From NCBI GenBank assembly GCA_020184695.1, contig JAANOX010000030.1:124001-188000 (forward strand): 64,000 bases of DNA. Reading direction: 5' to 3'. The stretch is from Histomonas meleagridis 2922-C6/04-290x. Taxonomy: Eukaryota; Protista; Parabasalia. The translations under genes were made by a program, and so were the position numbers. Numbering within the stretch: the first letter of the stretch is position 1; the number at the start of each line of letters is the position of its first letter. Under the pieces are notes generated by a model. It made no database searches, was not told the origin of the DNA, and worked only from the letters and a program-made list of their open reading frames with translations. Positions 564 to 60,775 of this stretch are shown here, one piece after another.

Positions 564-3500
564 TTAAGACTTTTCTGAATAAGATTCCATTATCGGTGTT
601 ACATACGCCGGGTATCCAACGGGCAAATTACAGCTTTGATTTGTCAAATTCCTTAAACTTTGCACATTAAATTGGATTGAGTTTCTTTCTCTTGAAGAGT
701 TAGCGAAGAACAACAAACTTCTAATTTCGTTTGCCCAAAATCCTCTAATGCATTCGCTTTCCATTTGGAAGAAAGACCATTCTGTTATCGAGTTACTTAA
801 TCTTACAACTGATACTATATCTTGATCATATACCATTGTTATTACTGATTTTTTACCTTCTTTTAAAACGCTTTCTAATTCTTCTGATCTTAAAGGTAAT
901 GCAATATATTTATCATAAATTTCATTAAAGAAGTTAAACAATTCTTCATTATCATTTGAAGTTGGTTCAAGTCCAACACTTATCATTAATAACGAAGCAA
1001 TTGAAAACCTAAAACAAGGACAAATGATATTCTCTTCAATGATACCATTCATATTAATTTCGATTTTACCTTCAAACAATTCGAAACATTTCTCTGGTAT
1101 GAAATTCCCAGTCCTATTAACAATTACAGTATGGATAAAATGAATAACAATCCACATACGTTGTAATAACTTCGGACAAAATTCTAACCCGAAATTTTCG
1201 GCAATACATTTTATGAACTTTAAATGTGTTTGTGAGAATTTCGGTATAATATTTTGAAGATAATTATCATTCTCTTCTTCTTCAGAGTTAATAATATTCG
1301 GATTCTCTGAGATGATCTTTAAGACACTATAAACAAGTGACTTAAGTTCCCAACTTAATGCTGAGCGACCTAATGGTGGTAAAACAGTATCTTGAAATCC
1401 AAATGTTGAAATACCAACCATTTCAATTGGCTTATTATATATTCGAAGCTCATACATACTAAAATTAGATGTTAACGCAAGATGTATATTACCGAAATTT
1501 TGATATTCTAATATAATCTTTTGTAATGTTGATATTTCATTATCATGACAAAGTGTTTGTTCTATATATTCTAAGCCACGTAATTGAAATGATATTTTAT
1601 TAGCTTCAATAGATATTATATGTAATATCGCTGCAAATTCACCAGAAATCATTAAAAAAAATGAATCATCTGTAACTAAACCTAATTCGCCATCTTTGAT
1701 CATTTTCCCTAAATTCATTTGAAGCTTTTCTGATAATGATAAATAAATTGGTGCTTCAAGTGGATGTTCTAAAGTTGATTGATTTAATGTTTTATTATTA
1801 TTACCATTATCATTATCATTTTGTTGTTCTTCTTCTGATGCTAAATGATCATAAAATAAATTCGGCTTTGGCGGACAAAATGTAAATAACATTTGATAAC
1901 CCGATAAAATTAACATTGGAGAACCAGTAAAGAAACTCCATAAAAATGATAAAAATGATAACGCTGAAAATGGTTGTACTATATTACAGATGAAATAACA
2001 TAATATTATACTTAATATATATTTCTTATTATCAATGATATCATTCTTAAATAATGAATATGGTAAAAGTCGCCATTTATACCATAAACGAATAAAACGA
2101 AAAACTTTAATAAGTTTTCGAGATATTAATAAACTTAATAAAAATACTAATGCTGTAGGTGGTATATCATAATCATGTTGAAATAATATTATTGTTAAAT
2201 ATAATGAGAATGAAAATATATGTGGTAATGTTTGTGCAACTCTTAATGCTTGTAATATTAAAATTGCTCCTAAAAGTGGATATAAATTTTTATCATTAAT
2301 TAATGAAAATGATATAAATGCAGGCGCAGTGACGAAGTTAGTTATAAAATGTGGATATTTAGTTAGAAAGTTATATTTTAATATTCTTCCATAAAATATT
2401 AAATATCGTTGATGTGTAGATAAATATGGTATAATTATATCAATAAGAAAATGTGCACCGAAAAATAAATATAATAAAATTGTTAATATTTTCTCATCTG
2501 TAATTAACACTAAAAATGATGTACAACCCGATATAAATGATACTATTATCGATTTAAACAAATGATTCCTCATAAAAACTCGGAAATTATCCGAAATCGA
2601 AAACTGTATAAAAAAAGTGATGACAAATATTGATATTGCTATTGTAATATAATTAATCCCTAATAAAAAGATTAATGATGTTCCAAATACTATTAATAAT
2701 GACCAAAAAAAACTTAAAGAAGCTTTTTTTAAGCCTGTTGATCCATTAAGTCCAAATAAATATTTGTTTAATGTTTCAACTAAATAATGAATTGTAGTTA
2801 ATGGATGTCCAAAAACTCCAATAAATATTAAAATAGGATAAAAACGAAATAAATTAACAGCAAATATTTCGATGATATTTAAAATGGGTTCCCATGTAAT
2901 AGTTATCGATAATTGTTCAATATATGTACTAACAGGTAAATATTTCCGACATATGTTAATCCCACAAATGATTCCTGTCATTCCAACACAGATAGATGCT
3001 CGTGTATATGATAAATATGGATCTGTTAAATTGGTCGAATATGGATCTGATGTCGGTGGTAATAATAAGGAAAAAATTGCAGTGCAACAAATTAACGCTA
3101 TATACCAATGCCATCCAGACGGATTTAAATGTTGTGTTTCTGGTACAAAAAGTGCAAGTAAAAATGTGATTATCACACATGATAAAAGATGCCAATTATT
3201 AGCAGGGCGTGTAAAGGCACGTGATAAAGAATCTCTGTCAAAGTGTATGTTAATAATTTGACCGCATAAAACTATCATATTTGTTTTAACACGGCGTATT
3301 GGTGCATGACTTTTGGTCTCTGGTGTGACAACTCCTTGTTGAATAAGTTCATAAAGTCGAAAGACTTCATCAACATCAAAACCGCGGCGAACAAGTTGAT
3401 ATGCACGTTCATCTGTTGGGATTCGTTCATTAAAAAAAACTGAGCGAGCTTCCCATAATGGCCCACTAATTCCTGGTGGAATGCTGGGGATATCTTCTAT

Positions 3501-3773
3501 ATCCTCGGGTTCATCTACTGCAACTGATTCATCCAATAATATATTAAACCAAGTAACAATAAGTTCAATAATTAAAATAAAAACAGCCCCAATTGATGCA
3601 ACAAGAAAACGTATTGTATATGTTGTTTCAAGAGAAATTAATAAATAAAAATATCCATATAATAGCAAACAAACTACAATTTTGATAAGATTCGGCCAAA
3701 AATCATTTCTGTGTAAAATAAACCCACCAGTAAAGGAACAAAGAATGTGGAGTTTAATTCCATACAATTCCAT
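564..3773 (-). CDS. Pecanex-like multi-pass membrane protein (Pecanex C-terminal domain)
   Basis: 1069-aa ORF with many TM segments. C-terminal motifs FQLRGLEY...TLCHDNE and ERNSIQFNVQSLRNLTNQSCNLPVGYPAYVTP match the pecanex signatures (FQLRGLEFRGTYC; RNSIQ...LRN...SCDQPIGYPIYVSP). Confidence 0.85.
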   Translation of the reverse strand: MELYGIKLHILCSFTGGFILHRNDFWPNLIKIVVCLLLYGYFYLLISLETTYTIRFLVASIGAVFILIIELIVTWFNILLDESVAVDEPEDIEDIPSIPPGISGPLWEARSVFFNERIPTDERAYQLVRRGFDVDEVFRLYELIQQGVVTPETKSHAPIRRVKTNMIVLCGQIINIHFDRDSLSRAFTRPANNWHLLSCVIITFLLALFVPETQHLNPSGWHWYIALICCTAIFSLLLPPTSDPYSTNLTDPYLSYTRASICVGMTGIICGINICRKYLPVSTYIEQLSITITWEPILNIIEIFAVNLFRFYPILIFIGVFGHPLTTIHYLVETLNKYLFGLNGSTGLKKASLSFFWSLLIVFGTSLIFLLGINYITIAISIFVITFFIQFSISDNFRVFMRNHLFKSIIVSFISGCTSFLVLITDEKILTILLYLFFGAHFLIDIIIPYLSTHQRYLIFYGRILKYNFLTKYPHFITNFVTAPAFISFSLINDKNLYPLLGAILILQALRVAQTLPHIFSFSLYLTIILFQHDYDIPPTALVFLLSLLISRKLIKVFRFIRLWYKWRLLPYSLFKNDIIDNKKYILSIILCYFICNIVQPFSALSFLSFLWSFFTGSPMLILSGYQMLFTFCPPKPNLFYDHLASEEEQQNDNDNGNNNKTLNQSTLEHPLEAPIYLSLSEKLQMNLGKMIKDGELGLVTDDSFFLMISGEFAAILHIISIEANKISFQLRGLEYIEQTLCHDNEISTLQKIILEYQNFGNIHLALTSNFSMYELRIYNKPIEMVGISTFGFQDTVLPPLGRSALSWELKSLVYSVLKIISENPNIINSEEEENDNYLQNIIPKFSQTHLKFIKCIAENFGLEFCPKLLQRMWIVIHFIHTVIVNRTGNFIPEKCFELFEGKIEINMNGIIEENIICPCFRFSIASLLMISVGLEPTSNDNEELFNFFNEIYDKYIALPLRSEELESVLKEGKKSVITMVYDQDIVSVVRLSNSITEWSFFQMESECIRGFWANEIRSLLFFANSSRERNSIQFNVQSLRNLTNQSCNLPVGYPAYVTPIMESYSEKS

Positions 3774-22261: not shown

Positions 22262-22333
22262 TCCGATATCGTTCATCGGTTAGGATATGTGGTTTTCATC
22301 CACGGGAGCGGGGTTCGACTCCCCGTATCGGAA
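22262..22333 (+). tRNA. tRNA-Glu (anticodon TTC)
   Basis: 72 nt. Acceptor stem TCCGATA/TATCGGA plus discriminator A. Anticodon arm TGTGG-TTTTCAT-CCACG with TTC at 22295-22297. T arm CGGGG-TTCGACT-CCCCG. Confidence 0.95.
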
Positions 22334-22663: not shown

Positions 22664-24952
22664 ATGGAAGAAAACCTTGGAGGACAAGACCATTCTAATG
22701 ATGCAAGAACCAGACAGGAATTTCAAGAGCTTTTTCACAATTTTCTTTCCACATTTAAGTTACCAAATGAAGATACTCCATATTATGAAAATCAAGTTCA
22801 TGAAATGGTAGATTCTGAACTTACCACACTTTTTGTAGATTTCGAACACATATCTGCTTTCAACTCAGATTTGGCTGATGTAATTCAATTATATTATTAT
22901 CGCTTTGAATCATTACTTCAAAAAGCTCTCCTTGAATTTATCAAAGATGTTGATCCCAAGTATGCGCAGGATGATCGTTCTCTTGGGGAGCGTACATTCT
23001 ATATCTCTATTGTCAATTATCCAATTCAATCAACAATCCGTGATATTCGTGCCTCTGAGATTGGTAAACTTTTCTGTATATCAGGTACAGTGACACGTAC
23101 CTCAGAAGTTCGTCCTGAACTTCTCAAAGGCACTTTCAAATGCAGAATATGCGGAGCCGAAATTCCTAACATTAGTCAAAATTTTCAATATACCGAACCA
23201 ACTTCATGTTCATCCAAGACATGTGGCAACCATACTAAGTTTGAATTACGTACAGACAAATCATTATTTGTAGATTGGCAACGTGTTCTTGTCCAAGAAA
23301 ACCCATCCGAAGTTCCTTCTGGTTCAATGCCCCGTACCATCGAAGTTATCTTACGTAATGATCTTGTCGAAACCACCAAACCTGGTGATCGATGTGTATT
23401 TGTTGGTACCCCAGTCGCAGTACCAGAAATTCCGCGTCGTTCAATAGGTGAACGTCTTCAACTCCAAAAGCCAGGCGGCTTTGAAACCGATGGTGTCACT
23501 GGAGTTCGATCATATGGCTCACGCGAACTTACATATCGATTATCATTTTTAGGCTGTTCAGCGAAACCTATTGAAGATGAAGACGAAGAAACTACGACTG
23601 CAGATGCGGCTGAGATCCGCCAAATCCGTGATAGTTCTGATTTATATGGTAAACTTTCACGATCAATAGCGCCAAACATATATGGACATGATGAAATCAA
23701 AAGAGGTATACTCTTAATGTTACTTGGCGGTGTCCAAAAGATTACTCCTGATAAGATTAAGTTAAGAGGAGACATTAACATATGTATTGTCGGAGATCCA
23801 TCTACAGCTAAATCGCAATTCTTAAAATTCGTCTCAAGTTTTATGCCTCGCGGAATATATACATCAGGGCAATCATCATCAGCTGCAGGTTTGACAGCAT
23901 CGGTAACAAAAGATTCCGAAACAGGCGATTTCACAATCGAAGCAGGCGCAATGATGTTAGCAGATCATGGCGTATGTTGCATTGACGAGTTTGATAAAAT
24001 GAACATTGTTGATCAAGTAGCAATTCATGAAGCTATGGAACAACAAACGATATCTATAGCTAAAGCAGGAATTCATGCGACACTTAATGCGCAGACGTCA
24101 GTGTTAGCAGCTGCTAATCCGATTCATGGTCGATATGATAAATCGAAATCATTACGTGCGAACTTAAACTTAAGTGCGCCGATTATGTCACGTTTTGATC
24201 TTTTCTTTGTCATCATTGATGAATGTAAACCTGAATCAGATGAAAAAATCGCAAATCATATATTTGCAGTACATAGAGAATTAGACACATCACTAACTGG
24301 AGAATACTTTTCACCAGAACAATTACGGAGATATATTAAATATGCGCGTAAATTAGAGCCGAAAATTACTGACGAATCACGTAAAGTATTAATCGAATCA
24401 TATATCGATTTAAGACAAGATGATTCCGTTGGCGTCACACGTTCTTCTTATCGAATTACTGTTAGACAACTCGAAGCATTAATTAGATTAAGTGAAGCAC
24501 TCGCGAAAATGAATCTCGATGAACAAGTTCGACCTGAATATGTTAAAGAAGCAACGCGATTATTAAAGCGTTCGATTATTCAAGTCGAATCTGAGGCAAT
24601 TAATTTGGATATACCTTCGGATCAAGTGAAAGAGATCGAAGATAAACAACAAAGATCAATAACATTCGAACAATATCAAAGAATTGCAAAGTTCGTAATT
24701 ATGCACTTGAGACAAATAGAAGAATTAAAAGAAATGGGAAAAATACAAAAAGATCATATCGAAACTATGGATACAATTGCAGATTGGTGGCTAAAGGAAA
24801 ACGCAGAAACATATGGAAAAGTTGATGAGATTGCAAAAGACGTCGAAATTCTGAAATTAGTAATCGAAAGATTAATTAAAGTAGATAATGTATTACTTGA
24901 AAATGAAACAGATCATTCAATATCAGTTCATCCGAATTACACCGATGAATAA
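22664..24952 (+). CDS. MCM6: DNA replication licensing factor MCM6
   Basis: First ATG (MEENLGG) at 22664. Zn finger C-x2-C...C-x4-C, Walker A GDPSTAKSQFLK (MCM6-type), IDEFDKM and arginine finger APIMSRFDL. Confidence 0.92.
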   Translation: MEENLGGQDHSNDARTRQEFQELFHNFLSTFKLPNEDTPYYENQVHEMVDSELTTLFVDFEHISAFNSDLADVIQLYYYRFESLLQKALLEFIKDVDPKYAQDDRSLGERTFYISIVNYPIQSTIRDIRASEIGKLFCISGTVTRTSEVRPELLKGTFKCRICGAEIPNISQNFQYTEPTSCSSKTCGNHTKFELRTDKSLFVDWQRVLVQENPSEVPSGSMPRTIEVILRNDLVETTKPGDRCVFVGTPVAVPEIPRRSIGERLQLQKPGGFETDGVTGVRSYGSRELTYRLSFLGCSAKPIEDEDEETTTADAAEIRQIRDSSDLYGKLSRSIAPNIYGHDEIKRGILLMLLGGVQKITPDKIKLRGDINICIVGDPSTAKSQFLKFVSSFMPRGIYTSGQSSSAAGLTASVTKDSETGDFTIEAGAMMLADHGVCCIDEFDKMNIVDQVAIHEAMEQQTISIAKAGIHATLNAQTSVLAAANPIHGRYDKSKSLRANLNLSAPIMSRFDLFFVIIDECKPESDEKIANHIFAVHRELDTSLTGEYFSPEQLRRYIKYARKLEPKITDESRKVLIESYIDLRQDDSVGVTRSSYRITVRQLEALIRLSEALAKMNLDEQVRPEYVKEATRLLKRSIIQVESEAINLDIPSDQVKEIEDKQQRSITFEQYQRIAKFVIMHLRQIEELKEMGKIQKDHIETMDTIADWWLKENAETYGKVDEIAKDVEILKLVIERLIKVDNVLLENETDHSISVHPNYTDE

Positions 24953-24995
24953 AAATTAAATATATTGAAAGAATTTTTTATTTAACAAATGTTTG

Positions 24996-27668
24996 TTATT
25001 GTTGAAGTAATTGGACTATTTCTTTATGATCTTGTTTTGTTGCATAAAGAAGTGCTGTTATAAATAATTTGATGATTTTCCATATAATGTTTTGGAATAT
25101 TATAATATTAGTAGAAATATTAAATAGTTGAATAAAAGATTTTTATGATTTATATCAATTCCTGGTTGTTCTATAAGAGTTTTAACAATTTCGATATTAC
25201 CTTTTAAGGAAGCATACATCAATGCTGTATTAAATGATTTAAGTGATTTCCAAATATTATTTTAAAATCAAAAATTATTGAAATAAGTATTAAAAAACAT
25301 AAAATAAAATCACTAGCATTAATAATAATTCCTTCATGCTTAACAAGTAACTCAATAATATCTTTATAACCTTTTTTAGCTGCTAAAATAAGTGCTGTTT
25401 CAAATACTTTTGATAATTTCCAAATATTATTTTGAAATCCAAAATTATTAAAATAAAAACGCAATAAAACAGAAAAACATTAATAGAATTAACATCAATT
25501 TCTTTTCGAATAAGAAGCAATTTAACTATATCTGTATATCCTTTATTAGATGCTTCAATAAGTGCTGTATCAAATAATTTAAATAGTTTCTATATATTAT
25601 TTTGAAATATAAAATTGTAATAATTAACATTTAATAAGACAAAAAAATATTTTTTACATTAATATCAATATCTTTTTGCATTAGAAGTAATTTAACAATA
25701 TCTATGTAACCTTCTCTAGATGAAGTTATAAGTACTGTGTTAAATAATCAAAGTAATTTCCTAATAATATATTGAAATTATAAATTATCAAAGCAAAATG
25801 AAAACATAATAAATAAATAGCTTTAACATTAACATCAATTCCTTCTTTCTCAAGAAGTGATTTGACAATTTCTGTATGTCCACGTGAAGATGCATAAATA
25901 AGTGCTGTTTCAAATTAAATGTATAATTTCCAAATATTATTTTGAAATATCAAAATATCAAAATAAAAATTAAATTTAACAAATAAATGTCTTTAGCATT
26001 AAAATCAATACCTTTTTGTGCAAGAAGTAATTTAACGATTTCTATATAACCACCATAAGATGCTTTCATAAGTGCTGTACCAAATATTATAAGTAATTTC
26101 CATATATTATGTTTAAATATAAAATTGTTTTTAAAAATTCTAAACAAAACAAATAAAAATCTTTAGTATTTATATCAATTCCTTTTTGTTCAATAAGTAA
26201 TTTAATTATTTCTAAGTGGCCATTTATAGATGCGTACATAAGTGCTGCCCAAATTTATTAGAATAAATACCGAATATTATTTAAAAATATTAAATTATTA
26301 AAGTAAATATTAATTAAAACAAATAAATATCTTTATCATTAATATCAAACACATCTTGTTCAAGAAATAATTTGAATAATTCAGTATATCCGTTTTCAGA
26401 TGCATATATAATTGCGTTTTTAAATGTTTTGAATAATTTCCAAAAATTGTTTTGAAACTACAAATTATATTATTAAATTCTATAAAAAATAAAAAATCAT
26501 TTTTTTCTTTGATATTAATATATCCATTCTTTATTAGATAAAGAAAAAGCTCTTTATTTACGTATGTTGGTGATGTTTTATACAAATTTATTGATATTGG
26601 ATTTTTTTCAAGTAAATATTGCAATAGGAATAAATTTCCATTTTTTATTGCTTTGTAGATAAGATATTCATCAATTTTCATTCCATTGTCTAATAAAAAT
26701 GAAAAAATTTCGTAGTTATCATATAAAATACAGAACTTCCCTAATTTTTCCATGTTTTTAATAGTATCTAATTTATTTTCATAAATATATTTAAAAACAT
26801 CATTTCGATGAAAAATAATTGCTATTTCATATGACCATTCAAACAATGCATGATTATGTTCACACAAATGAATGATTTCTTCATTTCCACCTGCAATTGC
26901 ATATTTAATTGTGTTATTTACTTTTTCATTATTCATAAGTAAATATTTAAAACATTTAACTGATCCAAAAAATGCTGCATAATCAATTAGTGGAACATTT
27001 TCTTGATTAACAAAAGAATATCTTTCATAAAGTGATGGTTCAATTGTTTGATTAAAATCAAAATTTGATTGCGATGATATTTCTTGAAGTTTTTCTATTT
27101 CATCATTTCGAATTATTTTTGATATTTCATTTGGATTAACTCCTTCTTTAACATATTTCTTATGAAGTTCAAAATCATTCTTTGAAAGTTCATCAATGTT
27201 CTGTAAAAAGTATTGCGAAAATTGAGCGTTTGGATAAATTTCATTGGTCATATGAGCAAAATAACATGTGGATTTGTTGCTGATGTAATTTTTTGGGTCT
27301 AATAGGTCATTCTCAATCATTTTTTCAATAAGATAATTAGATTCTTGAGAATTAACTAGAAATATGAAATGTGCAAAAGTATCAATGATTTTATAAGAAT
27401 TATTAAAAATATCATTTACTTTGGATTCAAGTTGCTTTAAATATTGAAAACATATATCACTTTGACCTTTCGAAATGAAGTATGAATATATGATTCTACA
27501 AATAGAGAAAATATATGAATAAGGGTATGTTTCATCATAATAAACTAATGATGATTCAACAGATTCATTTATTTTATCGATTTCTAAATTAAAAATGATC
27601 TGTTCAAGGAACACTAATGTGTTAACCGCCTTCCGATTTCCTATTTCATTATTTTGTTTTACATCCAT
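24996..27668 (-). CDS. DUF3447-type ankyrin-repeat protein interrupted by nine 68-nt inserts (conceptual product 686 aa)
   Basis: N-terminal part has LIDYAAFFGSVKCFKYL, AIAGGNEEIIHLCE and AIIFHRNDVFKY. Deleting 68 nt at 26425-26492, 26255-26322, 26085-26152, 25915-25982, 25745-25812, 25575-25642, 25405-25472, 25235-25302 and 25065-25132 leaves 2061 nt = 686 codons plus TAA (24996-24998), ending FITALLYATKQDHKEIVQLLQQ*. Confidence 0.7.
25051..26580 (-). repeat. Tandem array of 170-nt units (102-nt ankyrin exon-like segment plus 68-nt insert)
   Basis: The + strand anchor a(g/a/t)t(g/a)c, encoding the TAL motif, begins at 25051, 25221, 25391, 25561, 25731, 25901, 26071, 26241 and 26411. The units align without gaps. 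Confidence 0.9.
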
Positions 27669-27871
27669 TAGGAAAAAAAAATATTTTTTGGCGATAATTT
27701 GGTCAAATTTTTGAATATATAACCGAAATCATTTCCCACAATTGTAAACTACTCAATAAATTCAAAAAAGTGGAGAAATAAACTTCTAAAAACAGACACC
27801 GATACAGTTCGAATGAAAAAAAATTTAGTTGTGCGAAAAAGAAAAATCAGAATTCTTTACCATAGTCATAA

Positions 27872-50384: not shown

Positions 50385-51789
50385 ATGCTATGCGAGGAAC
50401 AGCAACGCAAAACTATAAATTCAATAAATGATAAATTGCAAACACTTATAACAATTAAACAGATTGTTTTTTTGGTTTAAACACAAGAAACGACATAGAG
50501 TCAGTGTGTTCAATAATCCAAAACATTGATATCATTTACCCATTATCTAATAATATACTTGTTAGTCAAATGATAAATACATTAATACTCATTAAAAAAA
50601 TTGACTGTAGTTTATACTTAAATTTTATTAAGGAAATTGAAACATTTGAAAAGAACAATAACATTAAATCTAAAATATTTAAAATATTCATCCAGCTTAT
50701 TCTTGATCAAAATTCGCAAGGAGCATATTATCTTCTTGAAAATATGATTGAGCATAATATTATTGAGTCTGAAATCGTACAAAACAAAGTGAATCCATAT
50801 TTCATGCATCACATGTCAGATGAAGAAATTAAAAAATCAGAAATTAGTGTATATTTGAAGCAATTTGCAGTAAAATATGAAGAACTATCAAAGAACGATT
50901 GGGAACTTCATAAGAAATTAATCAAAGAAGGAGTTAATCCGAATGAAATTGCAACAATAATTCGAAATGATGAAATAGAGAAACTTCAAGAAATATCATC
51001 GCAAAGTGATTTCAATTTTGATCAACACATAGCACTATCAATTTATGAAAGATGTGATTTTGTATATAATTGGAATGTTTCATTAATTGATTATGCAGCA
51101 TTTTTTTCAGCAGTAAAATGTTTTAAATTTTTACTTATGAATAACGCAAATGTAAAGAATACAGGAAAATATGCAGTTTCAGGTGGAAATGAAGAATCAT
51201 TCATTTATGTGAACAAAATCATTCATCATTTGAAGATGCATATGAAACAGCAATAAAATTCCATCGAAATGATATCTTTAAATATCTTTATGAAAACAAA
51301 TTAGAAGAAATTAATAATTTAGAAAAATTGGGCGAAATATGTATTTCATATCATAATTATGAAATTTTTTTGTACCAATTAGAAAGAGGAATGAAAATTA
51401 ATGAAAATATTATTAATAAATCAGCAAAAAATGGAAACTTATATCTCACCAGGTATTTTTTAGAATAAAACATAATACCAAAAAATATTATACTTTATTC
51501 ATCAGAATCAGGAAATATTGAACTTGTTGAATATATTTTAAAGCAAGAAGGAATTGATATTAATTCTAAAGATGTTTATTTGTTTCATTTGAAATTTATT
51601 TTTTTTGATTATATATTTCAAAATAATATTTGGAAATTATTTAAATTGCTTCATACTGCACTTATTTTAGCATCTTTATTTAATCAAAAGGAAGTAGTTA
51701 AAATACTTCAAGAATATATATATATATTCTTAAATGAAAACAAATTATACATAAAAACATCATTATTTCATGTATTTGATTTAAAATAA
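50385..51789 (+). pseudogene. Disrupted DUF3447-type ankyrin paralog carrying one 69-nt insert
   Basis: ATG 50385. Clear similarity to the 27668 gene (ELSKNDWELHKKLIKEGVNPNEIA, LIDYAAFFSAVKCFKFL). Frameshifts at T7 50467-50473 and near 51195, in-frame TAA at 51466, insert at 51580-51648. Confidence 0.75.
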
Positions 51790-52167
51790 TTTTTTACTTT
51801 AATAAATAAAATTTATTTCTTACATTGAGGTAATTTTATTTGGAAATTCAATAAAAGTTGATGAAGAAGCACTAAATTTGCATAAGTGAGATCTTACGGT
51901 ACTGATGAACAAGATAAATTTTATCACAAATACTATTACTCTTTGGATGTTTAAATCATTTTATTCTTGTATTGAAACGAAATTTGTTTAAATGCAAAAT
52001 AATAAACATGAAGTTATGTGCTGAAATTGTTGAGGGCAATATTAGGTGAAAAGAAATGAAAATTTTGGTTCATCATGAATATCATTTGAAAAAAATGTTT
52101 AAGTACTCAAATAATGAAATAAACCATAGAAAACACAAACGGATTCCACAAAAAATTTTTCTTCTTT

Positions 52168-60642: not shown

Positions 60643-60775
60643 GCACTTGCTGGAGCAATAGAAGGTGATCAAGTTGATGTTGTGAAATTTATTGTTCTGA
60701 TACTTTTGTTTGATAAAGCACTCATATGGGCTTCGCAAAATGGTTACACTGGAATGTTCGAATTTTTTAGGTCAA
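60643..60775 (+). pseudogene. Ankyrin-repeat remnant
   Basis: ALAGAIEGDQVDVVKFI...FDKALIWASQNGYTGMFEFF. Confidence 0.45.

Follow-up and report, generated by a model that had tools for sequence, protein, structure and literature searches.

Single codons kept between tandem 17-nucleotide segments removed from the RNA of a Histomonas meleagridis ankyrin gene

How can one protein be read from ankyrin repeats that recur every 170 nucleotides (nt), so that successive units fall in rotating frames? The question is raised by a gene of the parabasalid Histomonas meleagridis 2922-C6/04-290x, a parasite of poultry, located on the minus strand at positions 24996–27668 of a 64,000-nt stretch of contig JAANOX010000030.1 (assembly GCA_020184695.1, positions 124,001 to 188,000), referred to here as the window. 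A preliminary description of this DNA had proposed that each repeat loses one block of 68 nt by a mechanism other than GT-AG splicing. The present analysis supports, with good confidence, a different account: 36 segments of 17 nt are cut from the RNA, single codons are kept, and each segment is probably removed alone by intron-definition machinery, for which a divergent spliceosome is the likeliest candidate.

The gene and the anatomy of its loops

The published H. meleagridis genome comprises 43 Mb with 28.7% G+C, and its 573–638 predicted introns number at most one per gene (PMC8529796). The window has a G+C content of 28.6%, and the array that it contains is a live DUF3447/ankyrin gene. Once 36 × 17 nt are removed, reconstruction of the open reading frame (ORF) over 24996..27668 (minus) gives 686 codons followed by TAA at 24998–24996, and the lengths balance exactly (2673 nt = 2061 coding + 612 removed). 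The stop-free frame of 686 amino acids from 27668, which the preliminary description had obtained by taking 68 nt out of each unit, was therefore reproduced. Exon 1 (26499..27668, minus) is uninterrupted over 390 codons and, according to the ORF list and Pfam, encodes DUF3447 and intron-free ankyrin repeats. The 452-residue N-terminal ORF to which it belongs (26310–27668, minus) runs on into the array of 170-nt period and carries DUF3447 and Ank domains, with a match to PF11929 (DUF3447) at E = 1.9e-10, above the cut-off, and further matches to Ank_2, Ank_3 and Ank_4. The presence of both domain types places the product in the trichomonad DUF3447/ankyrin repeat protein family. Its closest named proteins are H. 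meleagridis paralogues; homologues also occur in Tritrichomonas, and that of Tritrichomonas foetus is a single uninterrupted ORF of 1980 nt.

The regularity of the array is strict. Tandem Repeats Finder reports a period of 170 with 8.4 copies over 25041–26477 (69% matches), and a 30-residue profile of the repeat core matches the minus strand at 25058 + 170k for k = 0 to 8 (25058, 25228 ... 26418) with zero deviation, which bears out the exact spacing claimed earlier for all nine repeats. In eight 90-nt coding blocks, no stop codon lies in frame, whereas the two alternative frames contain 16 and 42.

The interruptions occupy the loop between successive repeats. From the codons for K-D to those for T-A-L the distance is 80 nt, without exception, in the nine units, and every loop parses as 17+3+17+3+17+3+17+3. 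Each 17-nt segment precedes one codon of the four-codon beta-hairpin loop (K-D, x-x-G-x, T-A-L), and all 36 segments are in phase 0. The segments are T-rich and G-poor, with the consensus R-T-T-T-N9-A-T-T-T.

Decomposition of the loops on the minus strand gives the following introns and kept residues. Loop 1 (26419..26498) contains introns at 26498–26482, 26478–26462, 26458–26442 and 26438–26422 and keeps the codons AGA, GTA, GGA and AAA, which read RVGK. NNGW is kept in loop 2 (26249..26328), between introns at 26328–26312, 26308–26292, 26288–26272 and 26268–26252, and RYGG in loop 3 (26079..26158), with introns at 26158–26142, 26138–26122, 26118–26102 and 26098–26082. For loop 4 (25909..25988), introns at 25988–25972, 25968–25952, 25948–25932 and 25928–25912 leave NDGE; for loop 5 (25739..25818), those at 25818–25802, 25798–25782, 25778–25762 and 25758–25742 leave SIGN. 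Loop 6 (25569..25648; introns 25648–25632, 25628–25612, 25608–25592 and 25588–25572) keeps NYRD, with AGA at the place of glycine. The remaining three are loop 7 (25399..25478; introns 25478–25462, 25458–25442, 25438–25422 and 25418–25402; RWGE), loop 8 (25229..25308; introns 25308–25292, 25288–25272, 25268–25252 and 25248–25232; NLGN) and loop 9 (25059..25138; introns 25138–25122, 25118–25102, 25098–25082 and 25078–25062; NNGI).

Glycine accordingly stands at the third loop codon in eight of the nine loops, the AGA of the exception being one change from GGA, and no stop occurs among the 36 kept codons. Intron-free relatives encode the same ankyrin hairpin, D/N-x-x-G-x-T-A-L, contiguously (for example, INMGNEWGWTAL and INFTDSKGTTAL). 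Because kept codons alternate with segments, the protein reads KD-NDGE-TAL and not KDIY-FETAL, and the junction peptides predicted from this anatomy would be of the DNDGETALIYASSR type rather than the DIYFETALIYASSR type. A test independent of the protein agrees with the parsing: G is nearly confined to positions 18–19 of a 20-nt period, and distances between G residues peak at 1, 20, 19, 21 and 40.

Loss of the segments from RNA and their retention in DNA

Contigs from four runs of the same organism, three labelled 'RNA?' and one 'DNA?', were placed on 24900–27750. The RNA contigs begin at 27672/27655, a short distance before the ATG at 27668, and the last position they reach is 24963, a short distance beyond the stop codon; over exon 1 they are colinear with the genome at 26499–26794 and 27162–27672. 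At loop 1, two RNA contigs (X3 record 11 and X5 record 25; 483 nt, no mismatches) run from 26794 to 26499, continue with nine unplaced letters and resume from 26421 to 26328. Here 77 genomic bases are replaced by nine, so 68 have been removed with three codons kept. A third contig (X4 record 16; 634 nt, depth 546, no mismatches) covers the distal part of the array, its positions 106–199 lying on 25741 to 25648 and 514–612 on 25061 to 24963. Both pieces begin exactly at the fourth loop codon (25741 in loop 5, 25061 in loop 9), and across loops 6–9 a genomic distance of 587 nt corresponds to 315 nt of the record, the difference being 272 = 16 × 17. RNA lacking about 68 nt per site, which the preliminary description had named as support for its proposal, is thus found as 68 nt missing at loop 1 and 272 nt over loops 6–9. 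These contigs, together with the 80-nt length of all nine loops, uphold its view that the extra sequence is precisely removed and tightly fixed in length.

Transcripts of family members carry the same form. At loop 3, loose ends of RNA contigs at 26159, which derive from family members, show 12 nt of loop codons followed by T-A-L. Paralogue transcripts that match in part have the letters GAT AAA GGA and AAT GGA TGG between exon matches, and the consensus of the loose ends reads AAT GAT GGA AAA ACA GCA and similar. Messenger RNAs of the family therefore have 12-nt loops with glycine third.

The DNA behaves differently. Contigs of the DNA run at flank-like depth (490–600) are colinear through loops 1, 5 and 9 with the segments kept, and one of them (X1 record 7) is colinear over 26320–26794, across loop 1. 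Because the DNA contains the segments and the RNA lacks them, their removal must follow transcription, a property shared with U2-type spliceosomal introns. Translational bypass, which had been listed earlier as a candidate mechanism, is ruled out because the messenger contigs themselves lack the segments; a simple frameshift, which had been dismissed earlier, is excluded for the same reason. Programmed DNA elimination, comparable to the internal eliminated sequences of ciliates, was likewise rejected, and the genomic excision that DNA reads might have revealed has no support: DNA contigs at a depth of ~490–600 are colinear through the loops, with no search made for a rare excised form.

Several points count against this account of removal. 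The run labels are tentative ('RNA?'), even though the intergenic bin 27684–27750 supports them with a depth of 0 in the RNA runs and of ~530 in the DNA run. Junctions at the ankyrin locus were read from contig coordinates and lengths rather than base letters, and they are resolved for loop 1 and, jointly, for loops 6–9, with loops 2–5 not resolved individually. A 137-nt contig spanning 25032–25168 retains loop 9 unspliced in RNA runs X3 and X5, and X5 record 24 extends to 25763 and appears to retain only the fourth segment of loop 5. As far as coordinates allow, such partly spliced contigs also suggest that the segments are removed one by one. A protein search with the last 120 residues of exon 1, aimed at translated RNA contigs, gave no match. 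Taken together, the observations establish that removal takes place at the RNA level, in 17-nt units and in phase 0, with single codons kept.

Related loci and sequence signals

The layout is not confined to this gene. Across four loci, 26 loops were collected, of which 24 measure 80 nt, one 63 nt and one 81 nt; glycine is third in 18 of the 24 loops of 80 nt, and no stop occurs among their 96 kept codons. Just upstream of the window (L003 1880–4030, minus) lies an array of ten 170-nt units, eight with 80-nt loops. In its 63-nt loop (L003 ~3200–3353, minus), the first 17-mer is absent to the exact nucleotide, leaving the corresponding codon continuous with the upstream exon; in its 81-nt loop (2349–2520, minus), the second segment is 18 nt long and includes eight consecutive T. 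The published annotation calls no gene over the 12-unit ankyrin array at L003 1491–6191. Adjoining the upstream array, at L003 1–1040 (minus) and ~4.6 kb before the window, is a gene whose product has a nuclease domain of the IRE1/RNase L type (PF06479) as well as a weak beta-propeller match.

On WSYJ01000186.1 of assembly GCA_020186115.1 (L002), the 170-nt units of paralogue P0016 continue beyond the end of the published gene model: within L002 4001–6200, that model ends at the first loop (5521) and the next one starts inside the last array exon (6097). A second array on the same sequence, separate and of the TPLHLA ankyrin type (L002 1–700, plus strand), has repeats spaced at 230, 190 and 153 nt with 7, 5 and 3 segments per loop. 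Parsed by hand, its first loop consists of seven 17-mers that alternate with single codons reading A-G-W-E-A-N-F. Gene families thus differ in how many segments a loop contains. The 170-nt units also occur, with the loops NYGK, NDGK and NWDK, in a metagenome homologue (L001) whose N-terminus is 48% identical; a metagenome scan with a conserved 23-mer returned one unrelated match of 36% GC, which is not ankyrin.

Inside the window, a paralogue on the opposite strand (50504–51790, plus) contains one loop (51575..51655, plus) with segments of 17, 18, 17 and 17 nt and the kept codons EYGH. The third of these segments is identical to the third segments of loops 4 and 7. The N-terminal part of this paralogue is split over several frames and the paralogue ends soon after its loop; either decay of the copy or additional inserts not yet recognised could account for this. 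An isolated ankyrin-like fragment at 60682–60760 (plus; ..KALIWASQNGYT..) lacks repeat context and is possibly a relic of an array exon. Among the other genes of the window, MCM6 (plus) converges on the ankyrin gene, with ~44 nt between the two stop codons (24952–24996) and the ankyrin RNA contig ending at 24963. A tRNA gene (22262–22333, plus; Rfam RF00005, 49 bits) lies immediately upstream of MCM6, and a look-up of the ORF at 564–3773 gave no record.

Signal statistics were drawn from the 96 segments parsed from the 24 loops of 80 nt. A purine opens 89 of these segments, and T occupies positions 3, 4 and 15–17 in 84–93 of them, the count at positions 15–17 being 88–89. Position 14 is A in 77 segments and position 11 in 66, with TTT following. 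The 5′ dinucleotides are AT (53), AA (18), GT (15) and TT (6), and the 3′ dinucleotides TT (81) and AT (7), with neither AG nor AC among them. Most segments are of the form AT..TT, and the fourth segments of the ankyrin gene are always AA..TT. In composition, the segments contain 57.5% T, 34% A, 5% C and 3.3% G, and the exons are A-rich. This strand asymmetry points to recognition on the RNA strand. The adenines at positions 11 and 14 and the high T content are compatible with a branch point and a pyrimidine-rich 3′ end, but they are non-specific in an AT-rich genome.

The third segment (ATTTCAAAATAATATTT) is the best-conserved part of the unit (p-distance 0.19, versus 0.22–0.37 at codon positions) and recurs unchanged in paralogues and the metagenome homologue. 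A hairpin that it could form with the following GGAAAT (ATTTC..GGAAAT) was considered and rejected: it is 81.5% paired, with no compensatory changes, and 262 of 500 shuffles do equally well, so the pairing reflects sequence conservation only. RNAalifold predicted no pairs, and single-sequence folds were no better than shuffles (z-scores −1.7 to +0.1). These three tests revealed neither a bulge-helix-bulge nor IRE1-type helices or stem-loops at the cut sites. An Rfam scan of the window returned tRNA only and no small nuclear RNA. In a scan of the window with a position weight matrix, single matches were near chance (135 vs 98 per strand), phased pairs of segments 20 nt apart occurred only in the ankyrin array (22 vs 0.4 expected), and MCM6, dynein and the other window genes gave no sign of 17-nt elements.

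Candidate machinery and rival explanations

The proposed course of events can be outlined from these signals. Each 17-mer would be removed individually by a machine that reads an R-U-U-U start, an A-U-U-U end and a fixed length, with recognition depending on end sequences and length rather than on structure; A11 or A14 might serve as the branch site. Removal leaves three 3-nt micro-exons per loop and a fourth codon continuous with the following exon. Tandem duplication of a single ancestral repeat would have multiplied the 170-nt units, introns included.

Whether the removing machine is a divergent spliceosome working at minimum intron length is an evenly balanced judgement. A spliceosome is preferred because 17 nt falls at the lower limit of intron length (15–21 nt) that mikrocytids, heterotrichs and nucleomorphs have reached independently (PMC10245619), because U predominates in the interior, and because the 3′ end is preceded by an A at a distance of 3–6 nt. 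Points against it are the RU..UU termini and the single-codon exons, and we know of no precedent for 3-nt exons flanked by 17-nt introns. U2-type ends, GT (or GC)-AG, are absent from the 96 segments, and the allowed sliding of boundaries does not create them. The earlier statement that the ends are not GT-AG therefore holds, as does the finding that pairing GT with the CAG inside ACA-GCA fails, since by hand count it spans 76 nt and gives the wrong frame. Nor do the segments resemble U12-type introns, which have an ATATCC 5′ motif, a TCCTTAAC branch motif and an AC 3′ end: the consensus here is ATTT..ATTT and no segment ends in AC. The parabasalid combination of GTAYGT with the fused ACTAACACACAG signal has no match in the array within two mismatches, in agreement with the reported absence of ACTAAC..ACAG, and its three matches in the window are at the level of chance.

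The chief rival is that a dedicated non-spliceosomal endonuclease cuts each 17-mer, guided by length or by the RUUU/AUUU ends, and that an RNA ligase of tRNA type or IRE1/RtcB type rejoins the exons. We regard this as possible but clearly less probable than our own reading. The lack of GT-AG or AT-AC ends speaks for it, as do the strict 17 nt of the 96 segments in 80-nt loops (with one 18-mer in an 81-nt loop) despite slippable T runs, the confinement of the elements to ankyrin loops within the window, and the IRE1/RNase L-domain gene beside the neighbouring array, whose proximity may be chance. However, no bulge-helix-bulge and no twin stem-loops emerged from the folding tests described above. 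IRE1 in addition needs CNGNNG loops, which are hardly to be expected in segments with ~3% G, and on these motif grounds IRE1 itself would be set aside as the enzyme. In its strongest form, the proposal would be a categorically new excision–ligation system of Histomonas, with its own enzyme measuring 17 nt between RUUU and AUUU in tandem units with single codons; this, too, we hold only tentatively.

It is very unlikely that the array is a dead amplified unit and that what looks like spliced RNA originates in paralogues or in a copy without introns at another site, made by retrocopying or by excision from DNA. The ratio of nonsynonymous to synonymous substitution (dN/dS) among the repeats, ~0.7, indicates weak selection on the repeat surface and counts against our account; the paralogue at 50.5–51.8 kb looks decayed, and no search of the DNA reads was aimed explicitly at the joined form. 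However, exon 1 and the 3′ untranslated region, which are unique flanks of this locus, are linked to array exons in RNA contigs without mismatches, in-frame stops are lacking where the other frames have 16 and 42, DNA contigs of single-copy depth are colinear with segments kept, and the same layout recurs in several loci and in the metagenome relative. The outcome that the preliminary description had specified for a dead unit, with dN/dS near 1 and inserts always retained, is not what was found, since spliced RNA contigs are present.

More doubtful still is a single 68-nt intervening sequence per repeat, cut between K-D-I-Y and F-x-T-A-L as first proposed. It removes the same total, and both models yield a stop-free frame of 686 residues; the loss of 68 nt per repeat stands, but not its removal as one contiguous block, for in the 80-nt loop four segments alternate with single codons. 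With a block at the proposed position, RNA matches would reach 26493 and restart at 26424 with nothing between them, which is not seen at loop 1. The observed breaks (26499/26421, with nine letters between, 25741/25648 and 25061) fit the four segments and not boundaries lying 6 and 3 nt further in. The block model also places F, I or W where ankyrin needs glycine and scores lower against uninterrupted homologues (99/90, 85/62, 70/59, 67/53, 60/48 and 56/46 bits for four segments and block, respectively), and it cannot account for the 63-nt loop of the upstream array.

Least probable of all is that reverse-transcriptase template switching or assembly collapse made the gaps in a repetitive region whose segments begin and end with the same ATTT, since jumps between ATTT repeats would remove 13 or 20 nt and not 17, the gaps restore the frame and the canonical glycine loop in every repeat, and the genome itself encodes the pattern, with purine-rich codons in a T-rich 20-nt period and stops in 0/96.

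Known systems and significance for the ankyrin family

No description of such a layout was found in the published literature searched on introns of Histomonas and Dientamoeba, on non-canonical introns of parabasalids and on 17-nt and other ultra-short introns. Ultra-short spliceosomal introns end in GT-AG. They are conventional introns that share highly conserved sequences, with lengths of 16–17 nt in mikrocytids, 15–16 nt in heterotrich ciliates and 18–21 nt in the chlorarachniophyte nucleomorph (PMC10245619). The Histomonas segments are like them in length class, in their very narrow length distribution and in their removal from RNA. Those introns, however, are scattered singly over many kinds of genes, whereas the Histomonas segments have RT..TT ends, stand up to four (elsewhere seven) in tandem around 3-nt exons and are seen only in ankyrin loops.

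Type B introns of Trichomonas vaginalis have a GT 5′ end and an AG-type 3′ end, and they share with the Histomonas segments the parabasalid host, shortness, a T-rich interior and an intron-poor genome. They measure 23–25 nt, with a conserved CTAA branch-site motif and consensus motifs at both ends, and multiple introns per transcript are not reported for T. vaginalis (PMC12316389). None of these branch and end signals is present in the Histomonas segments. The non-conventional introns of euglenids, in which base pairing draws the two ends close to each other and length varies, are similar in lacking GT-AG and in their precise removal from pre-mRNA, but the Histomonas segments are fixed in length, with no structure supported.

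Introns cut by IRE1 (26 nt in XBP1; HAC1) and tRNA-type introns need stem-loops or a bulge-helix-bulge, and IRE1 also needs G-containing loop motifs. They resemble the segments in being short, non-GT-AG and precisely excised, and an endonuclease with a ligase would explain a fixed length; in the Histomonas segments, neither those structures nor the IRE1 loop motif were found. The 3-nt micro-exons of animals and plants are flanked by ordinary long GT-AG introns. That such exons are spliced at all (PMC8042270 for Drosophila) makes them a parallel for the single-codon exons of Histomonas, which in contrast are flanked by 17-nt introns in tandem. The ankyrin 'introns' of Giardia are rarely spliced and mostly 93 nt long (PMC10711314), and we judge them to be a different thing.

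The present analysis adds an independent test at this locus, the break-point argument against the 68-nt model, the natural variant with one segment missing and the negative structure tests. If the machinery is spliceosomal, introns of the minimum known length would work without GT-AG and in tandem with 3-nt exons, a situation that tests ideas on the recognition of splice sites and exons; if it is not, a new RNA processing pathway would be at hand. The natural variants, namely the loop without one 17-mer and the 18-nt forms, are ready test cases for the gain, loss and length measurement of these elements. Since the published annotation stops genes at the first loop or calls none, a large ankyrin family of H. 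meleagridis is mis-annotated as truncated proteins or empty DNA.

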